In this document: positions 30,201-55,388 of the stretch, piece after piece
How positions within the stretch are numbered: position 1 is the first letter of the stretch
Layout: every line of letters begins with the position of its first letter
NCBI GenBank assembly: GCA_965644295.1
Contig: CBFFRP010000362.1
Location: forward strand, 248,001-312,000
From: Paraphysomonas bandaiensis
Taxonomy: Eukaryota > Protista > Chrysophyceae
Reading direction: 5' to 3'
DNA length: 64,000 nucleotides
The notes under the pieces: generated by a model
Databases searched by the model: none
The model's input: the letters and a program-made list of their open reading frames with translations, nothing else
What the model was told of the DNA's origin: nothing
Made by a program: the position numbers and the translations under genes

Positions 30201-33200
30201 ATGAACACAAAGTCTTCTAATATTATATATCACGATACATCTGGATCAGAAACTATCCCTCGACCTTCTCAAGGGAAGAAACAAATAGGTCGTAAGAGTG
30301 ATACATCTTCTCTTATAGGGGGTATTGATGCAGGCGGTGATAAGTGGAAAACCACATATCAGCTACAAGGAGAAGTTCCTTCAGAGAAAACGAAACATTC
30401 ACATAAACGGAGGGTTGAGAACAAAGGCAAGGAATCATTTGAGTTTGGAACCACTCCAATTGAGCGGTTGAGAAAGCAGTTAGCATCAAGAGGGGCCACT
30501 GGGATATCAGGACTCGCTCGTCGGTTCAAATCAATGGACGATGATGGCAGCAGGTCTCTTTCTATGGCTGAATTCAACAAAGCAATCAAAGAATATCGTT
30601 TGGATTTTACAGAAGCAGAAATTGCTGAACTTTTTAACTTGTTTGACCGGGATAGAAGTGGAACTATTGGCTATGAAGAGTTCTTGCAAAAAATACGGGT
30701 GAGTGTGTTCAATGTACTATATTTGGTTTGACATCTATACAGGGCAGGCTAAACATGAGACGCAAAGAACTTGTTCATTTAGCTTTTAATAAAATTGATA
30801 AAGACGGAAGTGGAATTTTGGATATTGATGATATTATTGGCGTTTATGATGCCAGTAAGCACCCCGATGTCATATCAGGAAAGAGAAAACCAGAAGACGT
30901 ATTATCAGAGTTCCTGGAGACTTTCGATGTGGGCGGAGAGGTTGACGGAAAAGTCACACTCGATGAATTTGAAAACTACTATTCCAATATCAGTGCATCA
31001 ATCGATAGTGACGACTACTTCGAACTTATGATTCGAAATGCATGGCACATTAGTGGTGGAGAGGGGGTATGTGAGAATTCAGCGAATCGACGTGTTCTGG
31101 TCACTAGAGCAGATGGTACCCAGGCAGTCGAGGAGATAAAAGATGATCTTGGACTTAAGGCAGATGACAAGGAGGGGATGATGTCTCGATTGCGAGGACA
31201 GGGTGTCGATGTGGCTGCAGTTGATGTTCATTCAGGCGGGGAGAATGGAGTGGGAAAGGACAAGAAAATGAATCCGCGTAGGCGGCCTACAGGCAAGAAG
31301 GGCCTGAACAAGGGTTTCACTGGAGATACTGTTGCGTCTACATCGTATGGTATTAATTCAGGATATATTTCGAAAGGGAATGAAGTCAACTTAGGTCGCC
31401 CGGGAAGTGCTGGATACAAGACCTTGGCATCAGGTGTTTCAAGGTCAGTTTGAGAGGAATGACATATTTCGTTGTGCCATGTATGTTTGTTAGATGTAGT
31501 TAAAACGTAGTGACATGCCTTTTCCATCACAGGTCTATGGCACCTTCTAAATCCAGTGCTGTTGCAGCACCCACTGTGAATGCCAGTGATGCTATAACTG
31601 CACGTCATCCCGTGTTTTTGCAGCTCAAAGAACAATTAGCTTCTCGAGGCGCAGTAGGTATCGCTGGCCTTGGAAGGGCTTTCAAGCGAATGGATTTCGA
31701 CGGTAGCAAGTCGTTAAACTTTGAAGAGTTTGACCAGGCACTGAACGAAAGTGGATTGAAGTTGACACAGCCACAGAAAAGACAACTATTTGCCTTTTTT
31801 GATAAAGATCGCACGGGTTCTATTGGATACAATGAATTTATCACAGGGCTTAGAGTAAGTCGTTTGAAGATTTATCTAGACACTTTCCATATGTTATGTG
31901 TCACCATATTACACGTTTTAAAATATTATCAGAGCCTGGAGATAATGTCTTTGGTTTAGGGTACATTAAATGATCGTCGCAGAAAATTAGTGCATATGGC
32001 CTTTAAGAAGTTGGATAGAGATGGTAATGGCACAGTAGAAATTCAGGATGTTATCAGCATTTACGATGCCAGTAAGCATCCTGATGTCATATCAGGAAAA
32101 AGAACAAATAGTCAAGTGCTGATGGAATTTCTGGAGACTTTCGATGTGGGCGGAGAGGTTGACGGAAAAGTCACACTCGATGAATTTGAAAACTACTATT
32201 CCAATATCAGTGCATCAATCGATAGTGACGACTACTTTGAGCTTATGATTCGAAATGCATGGCACATTAGTGGTGGAAAGGGGGTATGTGAGAATTCAGC
32301 GAATCGACGTGTTCTGGTCACTAGAGCAGATGGTGCCCAGGCAGTCGAGGAGATAAAAGATGATCTTGGACTTAAGGCAGATGACAAGGAGGGGATGATG
32401 TCTCGATTGCGAGGACAGGGTGTAGATGCTTCCTCAATAGACTTAACATATGGTACAGATACGAGAAAGCCTCGTGCCGCTTCAGCTAGAGCTAGAGGTA
32501 GAGGTAGACAGGCGAACTCGAACCAGACGAATTCGATGCGCCATAAGGCACCTGCTGGTAGTGGGGTGCATCTCGCTCGTTCACTCTCTCGGCGTGCTAG
32601 TGAAGACCTTAGCACAGCGGAAAATTCCGAGACTAACAATGAAACGACGGGTGAAGTATTTGTTGGAATGACTCTACCGAATGGACTAGGTAGCAAATGT
32701 TCTGTAGTTTATATTAGGAATCTTTAACTTTTTTAACTTACGTAGTGGTAAAAGGAATAGATAAAAATGTCAAGCCCGAGAAGAAGATAAATCGACCGCC
32801 ACCCCCACCGTCATCATCTCCGTCTAAGAGAAGTGGAATGCATATGAGGTATTTTCTAATGTTTTGCTTCTGCACATATAGAATCAAATCTGTTTTGTAT
32901 AGTCATTTTTGTGTTTACCATGAAATGTATTACTGCATGCAGTCAATTTTGCTTTTTCATTATCATGTACATAGGAGGTCTAATATTAATGACGACGAGG
33001 AAGAACAAGGTAGATTATAGTATATGCATTCGGTTTATTGTTGCTCATATACTTCGCAGTTGAACCCGCGATTAGTGGGGGGGATTTGGAAACTTTGAAA
33101 GAACTAAAGATGCGGGCGTTTCGTCTATATGTTCGAAAGAATTACCAGGAGGCTGAGCGCTTATACCAGGAAGCTCTTGATTTGACACTTGCTTTAAATG

Positions 33201-39040: not shown

Positions 39041-40077
39041 TGGGTTGGTAATACAAAGCAATATATGGTTTGTATTGTAGAGTGAATTTATAGTCTCTTG
39101 AAACAGTCAAAGTGTCTTCCAAGTCTATACGAGAAGCATCAGAGTTTACACATTACCTACTATATTTATACCAAAATATTTTATACTTCTTTTGAATATT
39201 CCAAATTATTAACATTCGCCAGAACTTTGTTGCTTCAACTTGTTGATATGTGATTGTTGAGTTCTGCAATATGATGTGATATATATTATGCAATGAAGTG
39301 AGTTAATAGTGTGCAATAGGTGAAGTCAACTCATAGGTGTAACGGGTGATTATAGGTACAAAGGAATTAAATTCAGTTACTGATGTGTGACTATACAAGA
39401 TAGAACTGACTGATGAACATATGATAAACAGATGTTGTTGAGAACAGATGTTACACGAATATGTAGTGAAGTGTTCAGAATAGTAATTATAATTTCTTAC
39501 TTGAAAGTGCATTGTGTTCAACATAGCAAGGTTAAGGTTTACGTGTAGAGCAAAGTTAACTTCAGTGAAATGTCCAATTCTAACAGTGATATTTCTAGAT
39601 GTTGGTGATTTATTCTTTTCATATACACTGCATCGAACAATATCCTTCGTAACTATAAATGTCGTATACTGAATACATCATATGATCATCATTGTACATG
39701 ATTGTCTATGATTCCGCATTATTTGACCGGTTCTGGTTCTACTACTTCTATTTTTCAGAATTTCTTCTATCATGTTAACTGTATTTATACTCACTCACTC
39801 ACATTGTAACACTGATGTTTCTCGTTATCACTTGTTGTTTCTATTTTATACTAGATTGATTACTTCAGTTGCGAATTAAACAATTCCCAAACCATCCGCT
39901 CTTTCACGTTTCATTCGAAGTTGATTAAGTAATATTTTTAAGAGACTGAGCTATCCAACTGTAACTACCCAAAACAATTTAATATATAACAATCCTCACT
40001 ACACCACACACTTACCCTATACTCTTCCTATCCACAAAATTGGTAACTTTGTCCGTAGTTTGTTTAAATCAAGTACT

Positions 40078-43000
40078 TTACCTGAGTAAAGGTGTTCGCT
40101 CTGTCGCACCTGCGCTTGAAGAAGGAAAACATTCTTTGCTTCCTACCACACGGCCTTCACTATAACCACTGAAACTTACACGTTTTCCCAAAGAAAAATT
40201 ATGGCTAGCGTCTTTGTCATCGATAACAATTTGGTGCTGTTCTTTGTCTTCTACCCTTTTGTACTTTCGTGCTGGATGCCTCATTTTCGATCGAACTGTC
40301 TCTTGATCAACCATCCGCATTACGTTTTTCCTATACACGTCCAGTGAAGTGTGGGAGCAACTTGGCCATCCTTGCCACACTGAACCGGTATCGATGCAGT
40401 CTCCAGCAAGTACTAAAGTGTGCTCTAACATGATACTGTGGTCCGCCATTTCCGCTCCTGAGAGCAAGCGTGCGTTGGACTTGAGTACGCACCCATTGCC
40501 CACAACCAAAGGATTCAGTCTACAATTCAAACATCAAACCACATATTACACAATGTCATATATGAAGTGAAGCGTGCCTGAAAACGCCACGTGTATTGAT
40601 ATGAGCTATCAGTGATGAATCATCTACACTTGTTGCATCTCCTATGCTCACGAGGTCAGGCTCTGTCATCATGGGATCACCCCCATTTGGATATAAACAG
40701 ACGTTTACTCCAATGTCTGCTCCAAGCGCTTTGAAATACCATACCAGATACTGACTACCTCTAAAAAGATCCAACACCCCAACTTTGCCATCTTCCCCAC
40801 GGCGAATTTCCTCAAGAGTCAAATATAGCTGCCAGCGTTGGCAGTAAGACGACTCGTCCCATGGATAAGCACCTGATATTTTAGAAACATACAGTTTAGA
40901 GTAAAAACATGTTAGTTCAGATAAACGTAGATAATTAACCTGGTTCACGCTTTCCAAGAAGATGCCATTTAGTACAAATTACAAATATTATCCCTACAAT
41001 AGACATCGATACGAAAACAGGAATGAAGGCTATATAGAGTAGTCGAAAAAGTTCGATAGGGTGATGATAGTTTTCATGTGTAAGTTCTTTGAGATTGACC
41101 ACAAGAATAAGCGCTAGTACTGTCGGAGCATTGCGGTAACATGTGCAAAACGCCTGCCAAGTCATGTTTACAACCACGATTGCCCAGAGCGGTAGCACAA
41201 AGTATGGTGCATTTCCTTGATAAAAAGCTTTGCCAAACGGGCTTACACAGTCTTTCCGATCAAAGGTTTTGTCTTCAGGTGACACATTTATACATGTACC
41301 ATCTCGAGACCCTACCCATATCGAGCCAGTTGGGCATAGGAAGTTTTCTGGTGAAAGGCTACCGGAACCCAGTACAGCACCTAAGCAACAATATCGAGAA
41401 GTACAGAATTATACATGTGTGCTGCGTATATACCACGTCACACCTTTTTTCAGATGAAGTCCCGGGAGAATTACACATCGATCTGCCACCATAGAGCCGT
41501 CCTCAAATACTACCGATGCCGATTTGTCACTTGAAGAGGTCAATATGACAGAACGAGATCCAAAGACTACATCGTTTCCAACTTCCAACAGATCATATTC
41601 AACAATTTCTAATCCAGAACCGGGCCAATATACTCTTTCTCCTACCTTTGCACCCAAAGCCCGGTATATACAACTAATTATCTCATAGTGTGTTCCAACA
41701 AGCGTAGCAACACCACCAAGATGACTTCCTGGAAGTAACTTTGACATCAACCAATAACCTGTTCGAATGAATTCATCAAAACAAATGTTGAAGCCAAAAA
41801 TGGATATACGTACGGAATAGATTCCAATCTGATTGTTTTTCGGTTCCACTAAGTGGTACAAATTTCCCAATAAGAGACCACTTCAGTAAAATGACGAGGC
41901 CAAGTTTACAGAAAGGTACCACACACCGCTTCACTATACGTATCAAGAAATAATATATCAGTCTTCGAGGTTCAATCCACCACAGAAAGGCATGATAGAC
42001 GTTATGAATGTTTGAAACATACCATCCACCAGACATAGCAGAGGAAACCATTAGTTTTAAGGTAAAGAACCACGGAACTAGGGAAAGGATAGTGGTAAGA
42101 ACAAGAATAGGAATTCCAACAAAAAAAACTAAGTAAATTGGGGGACTCGTAAATGCGGGTCTGCAGTACTTTCTATCATCCGTTTCAGACCCGCCTGATT
42201 CATATGACGAGGAAAGAGGTCCAATGCAAGTGTCTGACTCTATTGTGGTACCTGGCGCAATAGCGCTCTTGAGACCGATACTACTCCTATTGCAGATTCG
42301 AATCGGCAACAGAATCATGTGACTTTCTTCGAGAGCAAACGGCCTCACAGTGGCAGCGTCAATCACCACATCATCACCAATAGTTAGTAAGTCTGCCTGA
42401 CCAAGTTTTGCATCCTTGTGAATACACACATTGCGGCCAATTGAGGCACCCATTAGTGAGTAATACATTCTAACTAAATAATTTCCAATGATGGGAATAT
42501 CATCGTCAACAAACCCTTTGCCAAATATCAGGTGTATTTGCTCCACTAGCCACCACCGCAGATACATATCTCCCCACAAGGAATACCTTCCAGGCTTGTA
42601 CCGGCCAATAATTAGCCACTTCGCTGCGATAGAAACCAAGGGATTGAAAATACCAGTGAAAATTCTTGATACAATAATCGCGATGACCAGTGCCTTGAAT
42701 CGCCCCATATTGTGCTGCATGAAATATACCCAAGGAATCGCAATAGTAAACCACATTATGATGCGTCGGAAGGGATAAATAAACAACATCGGGATAACCT
42801 GAACTAATAATGCAAGCCACGAGGTATTGGAAAAGTTTTTATTCGAATATTCCCATGAGAGATATACATTATCATCGTCATCAACACTCCTATGACTACC
42901 ACTCCGTCTTCGCCCAATTTTGGCGGACATACTAGGCGAGCCCAGTGTCTTCAGTGCAGAAACCTTGTGCGAAAGTTGTTCAATAGTGGGAGCAAGGAAT

Positions 43001-45623
43001 AAGTCTGATACAGAGATTTGAACTTTCATTTTTTTGCGTATAGCATTCACAAGTTGTCCGGCTTGAAGAGAATCTCCGCCAAGATCAAAAAAACTTGATG
43101 TGACACTGAGCACAGACGGAGATCCCAGTAATTCTCGCCATATAGTCTCAAGTTGCACTTCAACAGGGTTTCGCGGGAGCACCATTGTTGCTAAGTTGAA
43201 TCTCTGTACGGCCAAAATATACAGATCGTTCTCTGGCAATTCATTCAGAGAAGATCCTCCACAGTCAACCTGTACAACAAGAAAGGGGCATGCATAAGCG
43301 TGCAAAGTCTTTCTACAGATGGTCAAAACAGATTCTTCTGTACACGAATTGGATGAAGTTACGAATGCAACAAGTGTATCTACACGCCCACTGAGATCTA
43401 TGTGTAGAACACGACACTCAAGCACATCAGTGTTTGAGAGAATGAAGTCTTCTGTTACTCTCGCATCCGATACAACGGGAGTGATGGGTATAGCACTTGA
43501 TAGCGATGCTCCAGGTGGTGGACATGTAGCTTCATACAGTCGACTGACTGGGGGGGAGTCCTCATTCACGACAGGGAGATTAAAGCGTTTATCGAGTCGG
43601 ATTCGCAATATCTTATTTGTATTATTCTTAGGAAGAGCATTCATATATACGATGACTTGAGGCCACTTGCTTCTATGCAGCTTTTTTACAAGGTAGTCAT
43701 GTAGAGTCGGAAGGTCAATTCGAGGCTCCGAAGTCTCTGTAACAATCACAACACCCACAGTCTCTTGAAAACTAACGTGTGGAACAGAAAACGCACACGC
43801 TTCTTTAATACAAGGATGCTGCACTAGAACTTCCTCTATTTCAAAAGGCGATATCGTTTCACCACCTCTATTAATAATCTCTTTAGATCTTCCGGATATA
43901 AAAAGGTATCCCGCTTCATCTAGATGCCCTATATCACCTGTATCGAACCACCCATTCTCACCGTTCAGCGTAAAAAATACTTCGTCATTCGCCTTCTCGG
44001 TCTCGGCCTCGTATCCATGAAAGCACGGGGATCCTCTAACCATAACATGACCAGTAACAAGCGGAGGGAGGGTAGCCGTATGATCTGGATCAGCTATAAC
44101 TACATCCGGACCACAAACGATACCCGAAGTGCCTGTAGGAGACAATTGATAGCACTGTGGAGGAGATGAAATCGGCATGCACTCCGTCATACCGTACCCT
44201 GTACACGAAACGCATAAATCGGAGTAAATATGCGCATCAATGGCGTAGGAAAAGGTAAACTAGACTGAGAGCCCAATGTTTCTATATCAAAAACAACTAC
44301 TTTCATGAGGATCTGATATATTTCTTGAAGTTTACACTATAATTTGTTACATGCAGGTATAGGAACACAGCAAGAGTACTGAAAAAGATCATACGACCAT
44401 TAAAAGAATAGTAATACATATACGATGGTCTGTATTGTGTAGCAATTGTACAGTGCAGTATTAAATATATCGGGTAAGTAAGAGAATCTTATATACCTGT
44501 TAAAATAGTGGCATTGAACGTGGATTGCAAACTCTTAGCTAGTGCAGGAAGCAACGCTCCAGCGGCATTAGCTATAAACCGAACGGTATCAACACCCTTT
44601 AGAGTACCTCCAGCTCTGATGCGCTCAGCTTGTTGCAGGATTGCATGATGCATTGTCGGCGCAGCGTAGTACCACGTAACTTTGAAGTCCACAGGGCTCT
44701 GCAGAACTTCCCAGAACAACACAGGGTCAAACCCACTGCAGGCAATGACGCTCCCTCCAGAGAGTATAGGAGAAAATACATTTCTAATTATTCCCCCAAT
44801 ATGAAATAGAGGCATCATATTAAGATTCACATCGGCGGGTGTAAGGTTCCATGCAGCCACGATACAAGCGACACCCACGACAAGAGAGTCGAGGGTGTAT
44901 GGAACTCGCTTCTTGTTCCCACTAGTTCCGGATGTGTGTAAAACAAGAACAGTTTCCCCATGACCGTAATAAGAGGCTACCTGAAGCTCTTGGCGCAAAG
45001 ATGAAGGGGGAGGTAGGGAGAGCGGACGGTAATTCACTGGTCGTAGGAGAGACAAGGTGAATAGTCCACAGGTAACAGCACTGGGAGTTAACATGAGCAC
45101 CCCGATTTTCAGCTTATCCGCTGCCTGAAGAGCGGCACTACTAAATCCGGAACCCTCTCCAGACAGGATGATAATGGCTTGTGCTTGGGTGCCTTTTAGT
45201 TCGGACTCGATCTCTGTCGATGTGCTCTGTGGATTGATCGGAACTGCGCACCAGCGAGATATAACACTCACTATACATACAGCCAGTTCGGGTCCATTAG
45301 GAAGAAGAATACCTACACGAGAGTGTGGCGGAAGTCCAAATGATTCAAGATCAAAACTTTGCATCAAAAAACGCCGCAGATCAGCATGTCTGAGAGGACT
45401 CCTATCTCCTGCAGGCTCCCTAATGGCATAGTCGGATGTATGGGGAAGCAGATCAATCAGCGACTCATATCTAACTCCTCTATTAGATATACATATAGGT
45501 CAATATGAGGGATACGTACTTTAGCATGGGCCCAATCTCATAGCCGCGTATGCCGATCTTATTACCCCCCTCACCATAATCCCCTAGAAGATGAAGAAGG
45601 GGAACATTCCGTCGATAGGACAT
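40078..45623 (-). CDS. NRPS-like membrane synthetase: acyl-CoA-ligase-type A domain, T domain and Pls-type C-terminal region (TM + 3 LbH repeats), multi-exon
   Basis: LHTSGTSGNKK, MPLFHIGG, G|YGMTE, WFDTGDIG, GRSKEIINRGGE, LPKNNTNKILR; carrier FFDLGGDSL; three 'LGA.IG..V...DL+.IG.' units separated by TM pairs and 'KWL+IG+..PG' motifs. Introns include 45480-45519 and 44199-44496. Confidence 0.88.
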
Positions 45624-45910
45624 GCTCACAATCACCAGAATATATATGGAGTTTATTCAAATGGATTATAAATGAAATTGTGGCATATATCTGACGCATA
45701 TCTTTATTCGATTGTTCGATACTCTCACTGCTATACACATACAATACATATACATATATATACATATAGGACACTGCCCCCATATGAATGGTTTCAAAGT
45801 AACTTACTCATAGCGAATAAACAGGAAATAGAAAGATATAATTGGAGGATGCTGTTCAAACATCAACATATGGTACCTTGGATTGGGTATACAGAAATAC
45901 TTCTATATAC

Positions 45911-45915
45911 GTATG

Positions 45916-45949
<34 letters not shown>

Positions 45950-46039
45950 TGTATGTATGTATGTATGTATGTATGTATGTATGTATGTATGTATGTATGT
46001 ATGTATGTATGTCTGTATGTCTGAATGTATCTGTGTATG

Positions 46040-46073
<34 letters not shown>

Positions 46074-46183
46074 TGTATGTATGTATGTATGTATGTATGT
46101 ATGTATGTATGTATGTATGTATGTATGTATGTATGTATGTATGTATGTATGTATGTATGTATGTATGTATGTATGTATGTATG
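45911..46183. repeat. (TATG)n microsatellite, about 270 bp with a central imperfect stretch
   Basis: Directly visible. It lies between divergent start codons at 45623 and 46238. Confidence 0.98.
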
Positions 46184-46237
46184 TCTGGTTTAAACTCAGT
46201 CATATCTTGGGAATATATGATGTTATTGGTCCAAGCA

Positions 46238-47873
46238 ATGCGCTATCGCATGCTTTTTATAACGTGCTTTTCTCTCCTGTTGGTAGTTGTTGAACCATTT
46301 GAATGCTCTTGGTCAGGTTCCTCCTATCAGAAGAGGGTTCGTGTCATTGATAGTGAAGGTACATTCATCACGCATATATATATATACATATACATATAGC
46401 CTGTCGTTCTAACATACTCTTGTAGATACTTTTTTACCGTATTTATCTTCCCATGAAACGGATATCAAGAATGATGATATCATGCATGCCATTGTCGTTA
46501 TTCACGGCTATAATGAGGATGTTAAGTTTGCGTTCTGCACAGCAATGGATGCAGCAGTAGATATAAATGTCGAGCAAAATACATTAATACTTGCTCCGTG
46601 GTTTTCTCATGAACAAATTAATGGTGCTGACTGGGGAGTAAATGGATCTGATTGGAGGGATTGGAAGAGTGTATATTGGGCCCGCAATGCTTCGTGGATT
46701 ACTGGCGCTGACTCCACAACCCACAATCCCGATATTTCACCATCGTCATCATCCTATGATATGCTTGACATGATGTATGATATTGCAAATTCACCTAGGT
46801 TATTTTCTCGCCTTTCAAGGGTCACTTATGTGGGATTCTCTGCCGGAGCACAGATGATTAACCGTTACGCTTGGGCATCACGCATGAAAGGCGAAGCCAG
46901 TGGTTCGCTTGCCTCAATTCGGTATATCGTGTCTGATCCATCATCTTTCCTGTATATGAATGACCTTCGACCAGACTCAAGTTGCACAACCCCGTGGGAT
47001 ACAGGAACATCTCACACTTGTTCATCCTTCTCGCACCTTTCATCCGAGAGCCGGATAAGCTGCAGGGATGTAGACCAGTGGAAGTACGGCACTTCCAGAA
47101 TTCCGGGTGCGTCTCGCGGATATAGTTACTTAGAACACCTAACTTATGCCTCGGTTGCGAATGAACATTCTAAGATGTATATGTCCAAGGATGTGAGATA
47201 TGTGTTTGGGGAACTCGATACATGCAACTGCAACACAGATGGTTATCAGAATCCCTTTCACTGCTACATCCCTAGTGACGAAGCACTTGCAACTGACCCG
47301 GAGAAACGAAGAGTATCAGAAGAATATAGTGGTGAATGTCATGATACCTATCCTGATTCCCTCAATAACGATATGTCTACGTCATGTGCATCTAATTTCC
47401 AAGGTGGCAACAGGTTGCAAAGGGGGTTGAACTACATGTCATATCTTCGCGTTATGTATAGTGACTTTGGTTTTCAACCGACGTATGCCATAGTAGATAA
47501 CATGATGCACGATATGAAGACGTTTTATAGATCTGACATAATCCGCGAGTGGGTATTTTGCCTTCCCAACACGAACAAGTCACCTACATCAGAAAATAGT
47601 GCGCTATTTTCACAACTCTATACTGTTATATTTTTAGCGTCCAGTCTAAGTGTTGGATTTATCCTGTTATTAGCCCTTTATGGTATAATTTTTGAAAGAG
47701 CTCTACGAAAATCTGTAGGAGCAGTGATGTCCCGTCGAATACACGGTAGTGACAGCGTGGAATTGATGCCGACAGAGCTGACGAAATTAGTACCAAGTAC
47801 TAATTATAATATGAAATACAATAGTGGAGATGGCTCAAGTAATTACTCTGATGTGCCTTACTATGATATCTAA
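46238..47873 (+). CDS. Secreted/membrane-anchored alpha/beta-hydrolase-fold protein, 2 exons
   Basis: Signal peptide MRYRMLFITCFSLLLVVV; AIVVIHG, LILAPWF, SSYDMLD, VGFSAGAQMINRYA, FQGGNRLQRG and MMHD motifs; C-terminal TM. Intron about 46359-46425. Confidence 0.8.
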
Positions 47874-50527: not shown

Positions 50528-51794
50528 ATGTTAAGAACAGCAACACAGTCTCTGCAGCGCTATTGCTACAACAAATTATCAATTCAGCGACTATCGAGCT
50601 CGAACATTTTCCATAATAGCACAAGATCGCATCCAGATGGTGCGAAGATGAGATTTCAGCCTATAACAGGAACAGAGATGCCACGTTTCGCTGGGATAGG
50701 TGGGTTTCTCTCTGTAGCAGTGTGCGAATAACAGTTTATTGTAGCTACATTAATGCGACTTCCGCATATTGATCCTGTTGATGTGAGTAAGCACGATGTT
50801 CACATCGGATTAGTTGGAGTTCCATGGGATGGTGGAACCACGAACAGGTCAGGAGCTCGGGCTGGCCCCAGAGCCGTAAGAGACGTTAGTACTGCCGTCC
50901 GCAACGTCAATCGCGCAACTGGAGTGAATCCTTTTGCTCTTTGTAACTGTGTCGATCTTGGAGATGCCCCAGTAAACCCATTGTGTCTTACTGACTCTAT
51001 GGAGAGTATTACTGGATTCTACAACACTCTCATACAAAATAATGTGTCCCCTTTGACTGTTGGTGGTGACCATCTCCTTTCTCTTCCTGTGCTTAGGGCA
51101 GTAGCCAAAGACGAACCAGTGGGATTGATTCATATTGACGCACATGCAGACACATGGGATTCTTATTTCGATGGGAGTCGGTATTCTCATGGGACTGTTT
51201 TCAGAAGAGCAATTGAAGAAGGCCTGGTAGATCCCCATAAAACTGTGCAGGTGGAGTTGTGTATCTGACGCATCTGCGGATTTTAACGGTTTAAATCACT
51301 TGAATATGCTTATCCATGTATCTAGACTTTATTTTCACATCAATACAGCTTCGCTTTTCTGACGAAAGTATATGGTTTAGGTAGGGTTGAGGGGTGCACT
51401 GTATGCCGATGCTTTAGACTCTTGGGGTGAAGAGCAGGGCATCCGTGTCATTGATATTGATGATTTTCACAACCTGGGGTTGACGAGAGTCTTATCAGAG
51501 ATTCACAGTACTGTGGGTAGCTCACCTACGTATGTTTCTTTTGATATCGATTCTATTGACCCAGCCTTCGCCCCTGGGACTGGGACACCTGAAATTGGAG
51601 GCCTGACTACAATCGAGGCTTTGCGACTGATTCGAGGGCTGCGAGGGATAAATATGGTGGGAGGCGATGTAGTAGAAGTGGCCCCTCAATATGATCCTAC
51701 CACGAATACTGCATTGGCAGCTGCCACTGTGATGTATGAACTGCTTTGCATTCTCTCGGAGAGTCTGCACAAGAGGAGACCAGGAGCGAACTAG
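50528..51794 (+). CDS. Agmatinase/guanidinobutyrase-family ureohydrolase, 3 exons, probable mitochondrial presequence
   Basis: PRFAG, GVPWDGGTTNRSGARAGP, GGDH, DAHAD, SHGT, DIDSIDPAFAPGTGTPEIGG and DVVEVAP motifs; Arg/Ser-rich N-terminus MLRTATQSLQR. Confidence 0.92.
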
Positions 51795-54167: not shown

Positions 54168-55388
54168 TTATTTCCTATCGCTCACATCTTCAAGTAGATG
54201 AAAAATAAGGTTTTGTATTTCATCGTCGGTACAATTTGCTGGTGACGAGATGAAGTGCTTGATTGTATGAAGTGACGAAGGAGTATCCATATTGAATCCC
54301 ATCTCAGTCAAACGTACAATGACTCTGTCCCAATCCTTTTTTTCATCTAGTTTATCTTCCATCATATTCGTTACTGAATGAGGGGGTAGTGAAGATGTCG
54401 ACAACTGACCAGTAGATGCATCCAGTACAAGAGGGGAGAATTGCTCAAAGGTGTCAGAGTATGCGTTACTTGAAGTTGAATCAACAGACTTCAGGGAAGG
54501 GGATCTAGAAACCACATTTTCCAGAAATTTAGAACATTCAATATTCACTTTGCCACTAAGAATAGAACTATAAGAACTGCTGCAGGATACTAAGCGGTAG
54601 TCGAATGTTAGCGACTCAGGAAGACGTGGCACACTTACATCCACTGCGATTAAAGTGCTCTCCCCTGGTGGGACTAATGGAACATAGCTATTAACAGAAA
54701 GTGGTATACACACAAGGCGACTGCTAGCTGGCCATGTAACTGAGCCTGTGTTTTTTATATTCCATATAATCATTACCCTGTCGGAGGGGTGAGTCGAATC
54801 TGAATGTGGCAAGACGCGTATAGACAGGCACTGACCACAATAGTCCACAGTCGATTCTAATCGGGCAGTTCTGGACTTGACGTGTTCTGCTAGCTCACTT
54901 TTAAACGACGGAGCTGGAATCGTGGGGGGAACTGTCTTTTTAAGGTGCTTTCCTTTTCTGATTTCGGACATAAGAAGTGTTGCATACTCGTCTCTTGTAT
55001 GAGAATGAACTTTGGGATGACGAATTGTGTTTGCACAGCGTATTGCAGACAAGAGATCATCTCGACACAATTGATCCGCTTCAATGACATATTTGGATCT
55101 GTCAACATTGTCGCTGAATAATCTACACACAATTCGAAGTGTCAAGTATGCACTACCAGTCGTTTGAGTTATTCGTAAAGCTTCTTGTGCCTCGAAATTA
55201 GTCGACATGTGTATATCATCACCCTCATCATCACTCCATATGAAATCTACAGGACATGACGGCAAATTCGGGTATATACAACGTGCTGTTGATAGTATAT
55301 CGTCGTATCCAGTGTACAGCGATATAGCTTTACGTACACGTCTATTTACTCCGTCATATGAATACTTAACAGTGGTAAGTGTGGCCAT
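54168..55388 (-). CDS. NBR1-like protein: PB1, WH2-like motifs, FW (N_BRCA1_IG) domain, UBA-like
   Basis: VKYSYDGVNRR..WSDDEGDDIHM (PB1); WNIKNTGSVTWP..VPPGE (FW); RLTEMGF (UBA); LMSEIRKGKHLKKT. No introns seen. Confidence 0.72.
   Translation of the reverse strand: MATLTTVKYSYDGVNRRVRKAISLYTGYDDILSTARCIYPNLPSCPVDFIWSDDEGDDIHMSTNFEAQEALRITQTTGSAYLTLRIVCRLFSDNVDRSKYVIEADQLCRDDLLSAIRCANTIRHPKVHSHTRDEYATLLMSEIRKGKHLKKTVPPTIPAPSFKSELAEHVKSRTARLESTVDYCGQCLSIRVLPHSDSTHPSDRVMIIWNIKNTGSVTWPASSRLVCIPLSVNSYVPLVPPGESTLIAVDVSVPRLPESLTFDYRLVSCSSSYSSILSGKVNIECSKFLENVVSRSPSLKSVDSTSSNAYSDTFEQFSPLVLDASTGQLSTSSLPPHSVTNMMEDKLDEKKDWDRVIVRLTEMGFNMDTPSSLHTIKHFISSPANCTDDEIQNLIFHLLEDVSDRK

Follow-up and report, generated by a model that had tools for sequence, protein, structure and literature searches.

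A stretch of 64,000 nucleotides from the chrysophyte Paraphysomonas bandaiensis (GenBank assembly GCA_965644295.1, contig CBFFRP010000362.1, positions 248,001 to 312,000; hereafter the window, in whose numbering all positions are given) carries on its minus strand a transcribed, seven-exon gene for a protein of 1651 amino acids (aa). We propose that this protein is a single-module, membrane-embedded polymerase resembling the non-ribosomal peptide synthetases (NRPS), that it belongs to a eukaryotic family of 'AAE3-type Pls-like' enzymes, and that it makes poly(beta-L-malate) or a close analogue; we give this reading a probability of roughly 0.55. The coding region runs from the ATG at 45623-45621 to the TAA stop at 40080-40078 and is open throughout, with a single terminal stop. 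It coincides exactly with the span 40078-45623 that a preliminary description, made from the sequence alone, had assigned to the locus. In the literature searched, we found no description of this gene in diatoms, of the family-wide pocket signature, of the relic subdomain or of the altered histidine flank described below.

The adenylation (A) domain, whose coding sequence is interrupted by the 298-nt second intron, is complete and keeps its catalytic Lys555. It matches PF00501 (AMP-binding, E 6.3e-28 on exon 2, the match continuing on exon 3) and PF13193 (AMP-binding_C, E 1.5e-12) in Pfam, and its top NCBIfam model is the FadD7 family. When phmmer was run against the PDB, oxalyl-CoA synthetases were the closest solved structures of both halves of the domain (6qjz, E 1.4e-25 and 5.7e-29; 5ie0, 7.1e-23 and 1.4e-23; Pcs60, 8aff, 8.3e-29). 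For the N-terminal half the next kind of structure reached only 4.5e-11, and for the C-terminal half other ligases were close behind (3ivr, 5.2e-23; 4fuq, 9.5e-23). The preliminary description had read the domain as AAE3/Pcs60-like and not of the amino-acid type, and these searches agree with it: the motifs MPLFHIGG and TWYYAAPTMH that it cited are present at aa 254-261 and 299-308, and His258 takes the place of the amine-binding Asp of amino-acid A domains, which it had noted as missing.

With AtAAE3 (5ie0/5ie2/5ie3), LsOCS (6qjz) and Pcs60 (8atd/8aff), its best solved relatives, the A domain has in common the P-loop, the gate histidine (His214, equivalent to His258), the motifs TWY.A.PT and GWF.TGD, the hinge and the A10 lysine. 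It differs from them in the acid pocket. The oxalate pocket of AtAAE3 is lined by Val215, His216, Cys288, Ser289, Ala313, Met314, His319 and Lys500, of which Ser289 and His319 are the oxalate-specific residues (PMC8905533). At the same positions HMMER alignments place Ile259, Gly260, Ala337, Ala338, Gly362, Met363, Pro368 and Lys555 of the window protein, which thereby carries the equivalents of H216G, S289A and H319P; the loss of Ser289 and His319 is family-wide. Replacement of three pocket side chains by Gly, Ala and Pro points to an acid larger than oxalate, and oxalate was rejected as the substrate because Ser289 and His319 are Ala338 and Pro368. It is accordingly very improbable that the protein is a membrane-anchored, oxalate-activating AAE3/Pcs60 orthologue of oxalate catabolism with an accessory tail. 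Oxalyl-CoA synthetases are indeed its best solved relatives, and several fungal entries are named 'Oxalate--CoA ligase', but besides the altered pocket oxalate lacks a nucleophile for polymerising, and a fused carrier and Pls tail would make no sense for the catabolism of a CoA ester. The oxalyl-CoA synthetases are soluble CoA ligases of about 515-545 aa, whereas in the window protein one mRNA encodes the domain together with a carrier and a membrane tail of 750 aa.

The pocket is nearly invariant in the family. Eleven pocket positions read HVGAAGMCMPK in 99 of the 116 members with an A domain and HIGAAGMCMPK in a further 11, the window protein among them; these 110 include the Aureobasidium sequences P0192 and P0240, Fusarium, Verticillium, chytrids and diatoms, and P0192, P0238 and P0240 have the valine form in place of the isoleucine form of the window protein. 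The motif YGMTECMPI[SA] occurs in 202 of 251 collected relatives and, with a single-residue change, in five more, while most of the others lack the region. Because the pocket hardly varies across kingdoms, the whole family likely has one substrate.

A candidate for this substrate comes from PMAs, the polymalate synthetase of Aureobasidium melanogenum ATCC 62921, for which the original paper is reportedly Wang et al. 2020 (Int J Biol Macromol 156:1053). PMAs (QHD40385.1) is described as an NRPS with A-like, thiolation (T) and condensation (C)-like domains, six transmembrane regions and no thioesterase (TE), proposed to proceed from malyl-AMP through malyl-S-enzyme to ester bonds (PMC11286673). 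Its gene of 5049 bp encodes about 1682 aa; a deletion has been reported, and complementation restored a third of polymalate production (PMC9210645). The Aureobasidium members of our family form a single 90% cluster (P0192) of 126 sequences of 1685-1690 aa, those of A. melanogenum being 1688 aa long. The window protein is collinear over aa 36-1558 with one of the latter, P0240 (35.9% identity, 924 bits), and shares with it MPLFH[VI]GG, NAAGxLLP, YGMTECMPISSPP and LPKNxxxK. Like PMAs, it combines A-like, T and C-like parts with six transmembrane regions and lacks a thioesterase; it differs in having six spliceosomal introns, in an N-terminal extension of about 35 aa compared with about 110 aa in the fungal protein, and in falling into a clade separate from the fungi. 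antiSMASH places PMAs in an 'NRPS-like' region and not in the single 'NAPAA' region of its genome (PMC11905612), which fits the scores of the Aureobasidium cluster with TIGR02353, the profile of the Pls/PosA terminal domain (198-199 bits, less than half of the cut-off). On length, architecture and antiSMASH class, and not by accession, P0240 is very probably PMAs itself. The locus had been put forward as a candidate new polymer or acyl-transfer system. With the pocket shared, that novelty does not hold: the kind of system has probably been described in fungi already, if PMAs is accepted.

The tail of the window protein is of the Pls type. Hydropathy reveals three pairs of hydrophobic segments (aa 818-841/863-890, 1049-1081/1111-1140 and 1320-1354/1376-1394), each closed by KW..[IL]G[KR] (Lys886, Lys1132 and Lys1397). 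The three units are homologous to one another (hhalign probability 98.2-99.6%, E 3e-14 to 7e-25; unit 1 against unit 2, 9.5e-20; unit 1 against unit 3, 6.9e-25). TIGR02353 ('Pls/PosA family non-ribosomal peptide synthetase') matches exon 3 with E 1.6e-29 over profile positions 3-192, and exons 4, 6 and 7 more weakly, with cross-matches to other repeats of the profile. By exon, the scores are 102.8, 29, 23.6 and 23.1 bits; none reaches the curated cut-off of 423.1 bits, which the uninterrupted relatives in the family (180-215 bits) also miss. Hydropathy, TIGR02353 and hhalign thus agree with the Pls-type tail of three beta-helix units and transmembrane pairs seen in the preliminary description, and the profiles that it had named for comparison all gave matches: PF00501, PF00550 and, though under its cut-off, TIGR02353.

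In the architecture of Pls, as modelled for PosA, three transmembrane pairs accompany three left-handed beta-helix (LbH) segments, similar to one another and each of about 180 aa, in a predicted pseudo-trimer (PMC10522769). We modelled with AlphaFold the T domain and tail of a homologue, P0009, which is 54% identical to the window protein overall and 60% in the tail, from an alignment of 66 sequences. The model (predicted local distance difference test score 86.4, predicted template-modelling score 0.86) consists of a four-helix carrier domain, six long helices and three beta-helices. Foldseek matches to parts of the model comprise LbH acetyltransferases for serine, galactosides and maltose, the enzymes GlmU and LpxD, and carrier proteins of NRPS; the carrier part resembles peptidyl carrier proteins, with template-modelling scores by target of 0.89-0.90. 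A sequence search of solved structures with the tail found no relative and no solved Pls tail. Among 161 family members, 105 tail residues are at least 95% conserved, including His1178 and His1497, and the window protein keeps them.

To place the tail among prokaryotic proteins, bacterial and archaeal genomes, one per species, were scanned with an alignment of unit 1, which yielded 395 tail relatives; the best 80 loci gave 78 usable open reading frames (ORFs), most of about 1340 aa. The A5 motif YGPTE[AT]TV is present in 77 of these, the 78th being a fragment without the motif, and none of the 78 has a ligase-type A domain. In phmmer comparisons with bacterial Pls-type proteins, the carrier domain plus unit 1 of the window protein scored 100-123 bits and unit 3 scored 36-67 bits in 8 of the 12 proteins listed, while its A domain reached at most 18 bits against theirs. 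Like Pls of Streptomyces albulus and PosA of Acinetobacter baumannii (PMC10522769), the window protein has one A-T module ahead of a tail of about 730-750 aa that combines three transmembrane pairs with three beta-helix segments; C and TE domains are absent, the carrier site is of the GGxS type, and a conserved histidine follows TE.DL..IGD in the third unit. The homology of its tail to TIGR02353 and to the 78 bacterial proteins would also suit a genuine poly(amino acid) synthetase of the Pls/PosA type, with epsilon-polylysine or another cationic isopeptide polymer as its product. This is nevertheless very improbable, since the A domain belongs to another ANL subfamily, has His in place of the amine-binding Asp235 and reads YGMTECMP at A5, the TIGR02353 scores are far under the cut-off (less than half of it), and the acidic HLFEDR flank of the histidine is exchanged for HINTRG. 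The window protein further differs from Pls and PosA in keeping a dead A C-subdomain between its A and T domains, and its expected product is an anionic polyester as opposed to a cationic polyamide.

This dead subdomain is a vestige of about 110 residues, placed after the working A domain and ahead of the carrier domain, and was recognised with a profile. Built from the region in 65 family members, the profile found the A8-A10 part of bacterial Pls-type proteins (E 4e-16 to 4e-12); its consensus retains an A9-like 'LhgYlvP' and has lost the A10 lysine. As a single sequence, the linker of the window protein (aa 566-705) found no match in bacterial Pls-type proteins; it is too decayed for detection in this way, and the family profile alone reveals the relic. 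The match to A8-A10, and the amino-acid A domains carried by the bacterial tail relatives examined, suggest that the family arose by a domain swap, in which a complete AAE3-type ligase took the place of the amino-acid A domain's core in an ancestor of the Pls type. The ligase would have brought its own C-subdomain and left the dead one behind. The carrier domain that follows has its phosphopantetheine serine, Ser736, in GGDSL, where the preliminary description had put it (about 43070).

Bacterial and family tails were compared through local phmmer alignments, hmmalign having been dropped for a register slip that set KW on GR. In these alignments TEPDLVSIGD...AHINTRG of unit 3 corresponds to the bacterial TE[HY]DLV.IGD...THLFEDR, and His1497 falls on the histidine of HLFEDR. 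HLFEDR[VIL] occurs exactly once, in unit 3, in all 68 full-length bacterial Pls-type proteins; the motif is our own observation on these 68 and not a published criterion. The corresponding eukaryotic motif was found in 147 of 161 members, the variants listed being mostly H[IV]N[ST]RG, with four HINTAG. By analogy with the LbH O-acetyltransferases, His1497 is a plausible general base, and the change of its flank from Glu-Asp to Asn-Ser/Thr-Arg fits a shift from a cationic amine to an anionic hydroxy acid as the nucleophile.

Relatives of the protein are numerous. A word search with exon 3 found 2388 proteins at E<=0.001 among 8000 scored candidates, and more than 1000 eukaryotic relatives occur in diatoms, fungi, a dinoflagellate and a rotifer, which bears out the earlier expectation of uncharacterised fungal and stramenopile proteins. 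The closest are metagenome proteins with 58-63% identity; named ones include those of Cyclotella cryptica, Amphora coffeaeformis, a Bacillariaceae metagenome-assembled genome (MAG), Symbiodinium ('AAE3, partial') and the rotifer Adineta vaga. Fungal relatives from four phyla are filed as 'transporter', 'peroxisomal-coenzyme A synthetase' or 'Oxalate--CoA ligase', and the names in the ESM Atlas gave no function. In a quick, unrooted tree of the carrier domain and tail (53 rows, LG+G4, SH-aLRT), the window protein falls into a starred clade with P0009, P0011, P0014 and P0017, apart from the fungi. A second well-supported diatom clade, at about 33% identity, surrounds the Amphora protein P0048 (also P0033, P0047 and P0050); the two diatom-type clades suggest two paralogues in diatoms. 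P0011 ('archaeon' EON64_01440) and P0089 ('Acidobacteria bacterium') are filed under prokaryotic MAGs yet carry the ligase-type signature of the eukaryotic proteins, and both probably come from eukaryotic contigs that were mis-binned; P0011 groups with the clade of the window protein. The N-terminal motif at aa 7-33 is kept in diatom-type relatives; in the proteins of Mycena and Adineta it is hard to make out. Judged by eye, it is not a signal peptide.

Taken together, these features suggest a reaction scheme parallel to those proposed for Pls with lysine and for the fungal polymalate synthetase. The A domain would adenylate a small carboxylic acid that has no amino group, most likely L-malate at its beta-carboxyl, and the acyl group would be loaded as a thioester onto the phosphopantetheine arm of Ser736. 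In the pseudo-trimeric beta-helix domain, the invariant His1497 of unit 3 would act as the base, a hydroxyl, either from free malate or from the growing chain, would attack the thioester, and an ester-linked homopolymer, poly(beta-L-malate) or a close analogue, would leave at or through the membrane.

Several points weigh against this scheme. Malate is a predicted substrate, and the evidence on PMAs is genetic (knock-out and complementation, according to reviews) and not biochemical. QHD40385.1 is not among the 15 of the 126 P0192-cluster members that were listed. The window protein is just 36% identical to the fungal protein and lies outside the fungal clade, the structural model belongs to the homologue P0009, and the role proposed for His1497 draws on its conservation and on the LbH acyltransferases. 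To our knowledge, many fungi that carry the gene are not known as polymalate producers, and polymalate has not been reported from diatoms. The last point, together with the separation of the window clade from the fungi and the two paralogous clades of diatoms, would also suit a distinctly less probable alternative, in which the same machine uses another small hydroxy- or dicarboxylic acid (for example tartrate, glycerate, malonate or one of the succinate semialdehyde type), polymerised or transferred once to a lipid, sugar or polyamine at the membrane or cell surface, with a product that may be diatom-specific. The pocket is neither of the oxalate type nor of any characterised type, and LbH enzymes usually transfer an acyl group to a hydroxyl or amine acceptor in a single turnover. 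Against such an alternative, the near-invariance of the pocket from Aureobasidium to diatoms suggests that the acid is that of the fungal enzyme, and the full threefold Pls-type tail is known only from polymerases (PMC10522769).

Poly(beta-L-malate) or a close analogue remains the product that we favour for the window protein. As far as we know, polymalate has been found so far only in Aureobasidium, Penicillium and Physarum. It is a tentative extension, to which we give somewhat less than an even chance, that diatoms and, by homology, dinoflagellates, chytrids and other eukaryotes with the gene form an anionic polyester at a membrane, either poly(malate) or a related one.

The exons were first predicted from reading frames and splice signals, and public sequencing runs were then mapped to positions 40000-45700 of the window (5701 letters). 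All six splice joints are found in one 5173-nt transcript contig of run X1; transcripts of run X4 have five of the six, all except that of the third intron, and the polyA marine metatranscriptome X5 has the two 3' joints spliced. The reads place the acceptor of intron 1 at 45471/45470, giving an intron of 49 nt. The X1 contig passes unspliced through the stop codon despite a good donor-like CAG/GTAAAG there, and the DNA run X9 contains the unspliced locus. With six joints in a single contig and further joints in X4 and X5, the locus is one transcribed gene, as the preliminary description had read it, and the RNA does not divide it into several. The locus of a relative (L001-L003; 62% identical protein) has introns at the positions of introns 3, 4 and 5 and lacks introns 2 and 6, the position of the GC-AG intron being intronless in L001 and L002. 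That the gene is decaying or non-functional, a misassembly or a contaminant is barely credible: the decayed domain at aa 593-700 could be taken in that sense, but the frame of 1651 codons is intact over seven exons, several runs and environmental polyA RNA contain spliced transcripts, all catalytic motifs and the 105 family-invariant tail residues are kept, and the relative's locus contains the same gene with three intron positions in common.

The features of the gene and its surroundings are listed in Table 1. No gene cluster was found around the synthetase gene, and the relative's locus has other neighbours. In the window, its neighbours comprise genes for EF-hand proteins and for an N_BRCA1_IG/WH2 protein, a fragment of the arginase family, and two ORFs that match no family. 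The ORF divergent from the synthetase gene at 46482 suggests a membrane-anchored alpha/beta hydrolase by its motifs; it had no sequence match in Pfam or the PDB, and no homologue of it stands beside the synthetase in L001-L003, which extend only about 2 kb upstream. The spacer of 860 nt between the two genes contains a (GTAT)n microsatellite at 45911-46184 (about 68 copies, 94% matches).

Table 1. Features of the synthetase gene and of neighbouring coding sequences, in window positions (TM, transmembrane segment).
Feature	Position	Strand	Details	Evidence
Coding exons (7)	45623-45520, 45470-44497, 44198-41814, 41758-41444, 41380-40940, 40872-40578, 40519-40078	minus		transcript joints
Introns (6)	45519-45471, 44496-44199, 41813-41759, 41443-41381, 40939-40873, 40577-40520	minus	49, 298, 55, 63, 67 and 58 nt	run X1 contig
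GC-AG intron (last of six)	40520-40577	minus	58 nt; joint 40519/40578; plus-strand ends CT..GC; donor AG/GCACGC, acceptor TTGTAG	spliced in X1, X4, X5
Conserved N-terminal motif, aa 7-33	45525-45605	minus	PLLxxLGxYGxxG...IRG; exon 1	aligns with N-termini of P0010, P0020 (Cyclotella cryptica), P0034, P0106, P0115
AAE3/oxalyl-CoA-ligase-like A domain, aa 36-575	43552-45469	minus		Pfam/NCBIfam scans, PDB phmmer, pocket signature
Adenylation motifs	44935-44918, 44806-44792, 44572-44555, 44196-44173, 43614-43612	minus	P-loop TSGTSG, FHIGG, ANAAGA, YGMTECMP, codon of A10 Lys555
Vestigial NRPS adenylation C-subdomain, aa ~593-700	43177-43500	minus		family profile against bacterial Pls-type proteins
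Carrier (thiolation) domain, aa 708-770	42967-43155	minus		PF00550, E 2.7e-15
Phosphopantetheine Ser736	43071-43069	minus	codon; in GGDSL, between A domain and tail
Tail unit 1	42139-42843	minus	TM1 42825-42754; TM2 42690-42607, ending KWLIIGRYKPG; left-handed beta-helix 1 42489-42202	TIGR02353, hydropathy, phmmer
Tail unit 2	41214-42138	minus	TM3 42132-42034; TM4 41946-41857; beta-helix 2 41699-41289, spanning introns 3 and 4	hydropathy, hhalign
Invariant His1178 (unit 2)	41690-41688	minus	codon	family conservation
Tail unit 3	40360-41213	minus	TM5 41201-41097; TM6 41033-40977; beta-helix 3 40774-40360, spanning the GC-AG intron	hhalign
Invariant His1497 (unit 3)	40603-40601	minus	codon; in AHINTRG	family conservation
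C-terminal tail, aa 1559-1651	40081-40359	minus	93 aa; no conservation	161-sequence family alignment
ORF divergent from synthetase	46482-47873	plus	463 aa; GFSAG nucleophile-elbow-like motif after VVIHGY; C-terminal hydrophobic helix
Other coding pieces, no obvious link to synthetase	50753-51268, 30728-32727, 54168-55388	plus, plus, minus	arginase-family fragment (2e-45), two EF-hand ORFs, ORF with weak N_BRCA1_IG and WH2 matches

If the enzyme of diatoms does polymerise malate, abundant marine primary producers would make a polyester that, as far as we know, has never been looked for there, with a bearing on diatom exopolymers, on the chemistry of biomineralisation and on marine carbon. Such a polyanion, secreted or intracellular, could partner the polycationic silica-forming molecules, bind metals or Ca2+, or store carbon. 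The family would also be the first clear case of a Pls-type polyamide polymerase turned into a polyester polymerase, the conversion consisting of an acyl-CoA-ligase domain swapped in and a charge inverted beside the catalytic histidine; the domain-swap origin and the changed histidine motif would then offer handles on how Pls-type tails choose between amide and ester, and on their engineering. The invariant pocket amounts to a testable substrate prediction for more than 1000 eukaryotic proteins that are now unannotated or misannotated as 'oxalate-CoA ligase', 'peroxisomal-CoA synthetase' or 'transporter', and the family supplies candidates for identifying the polymalate synthetase of Physarum.

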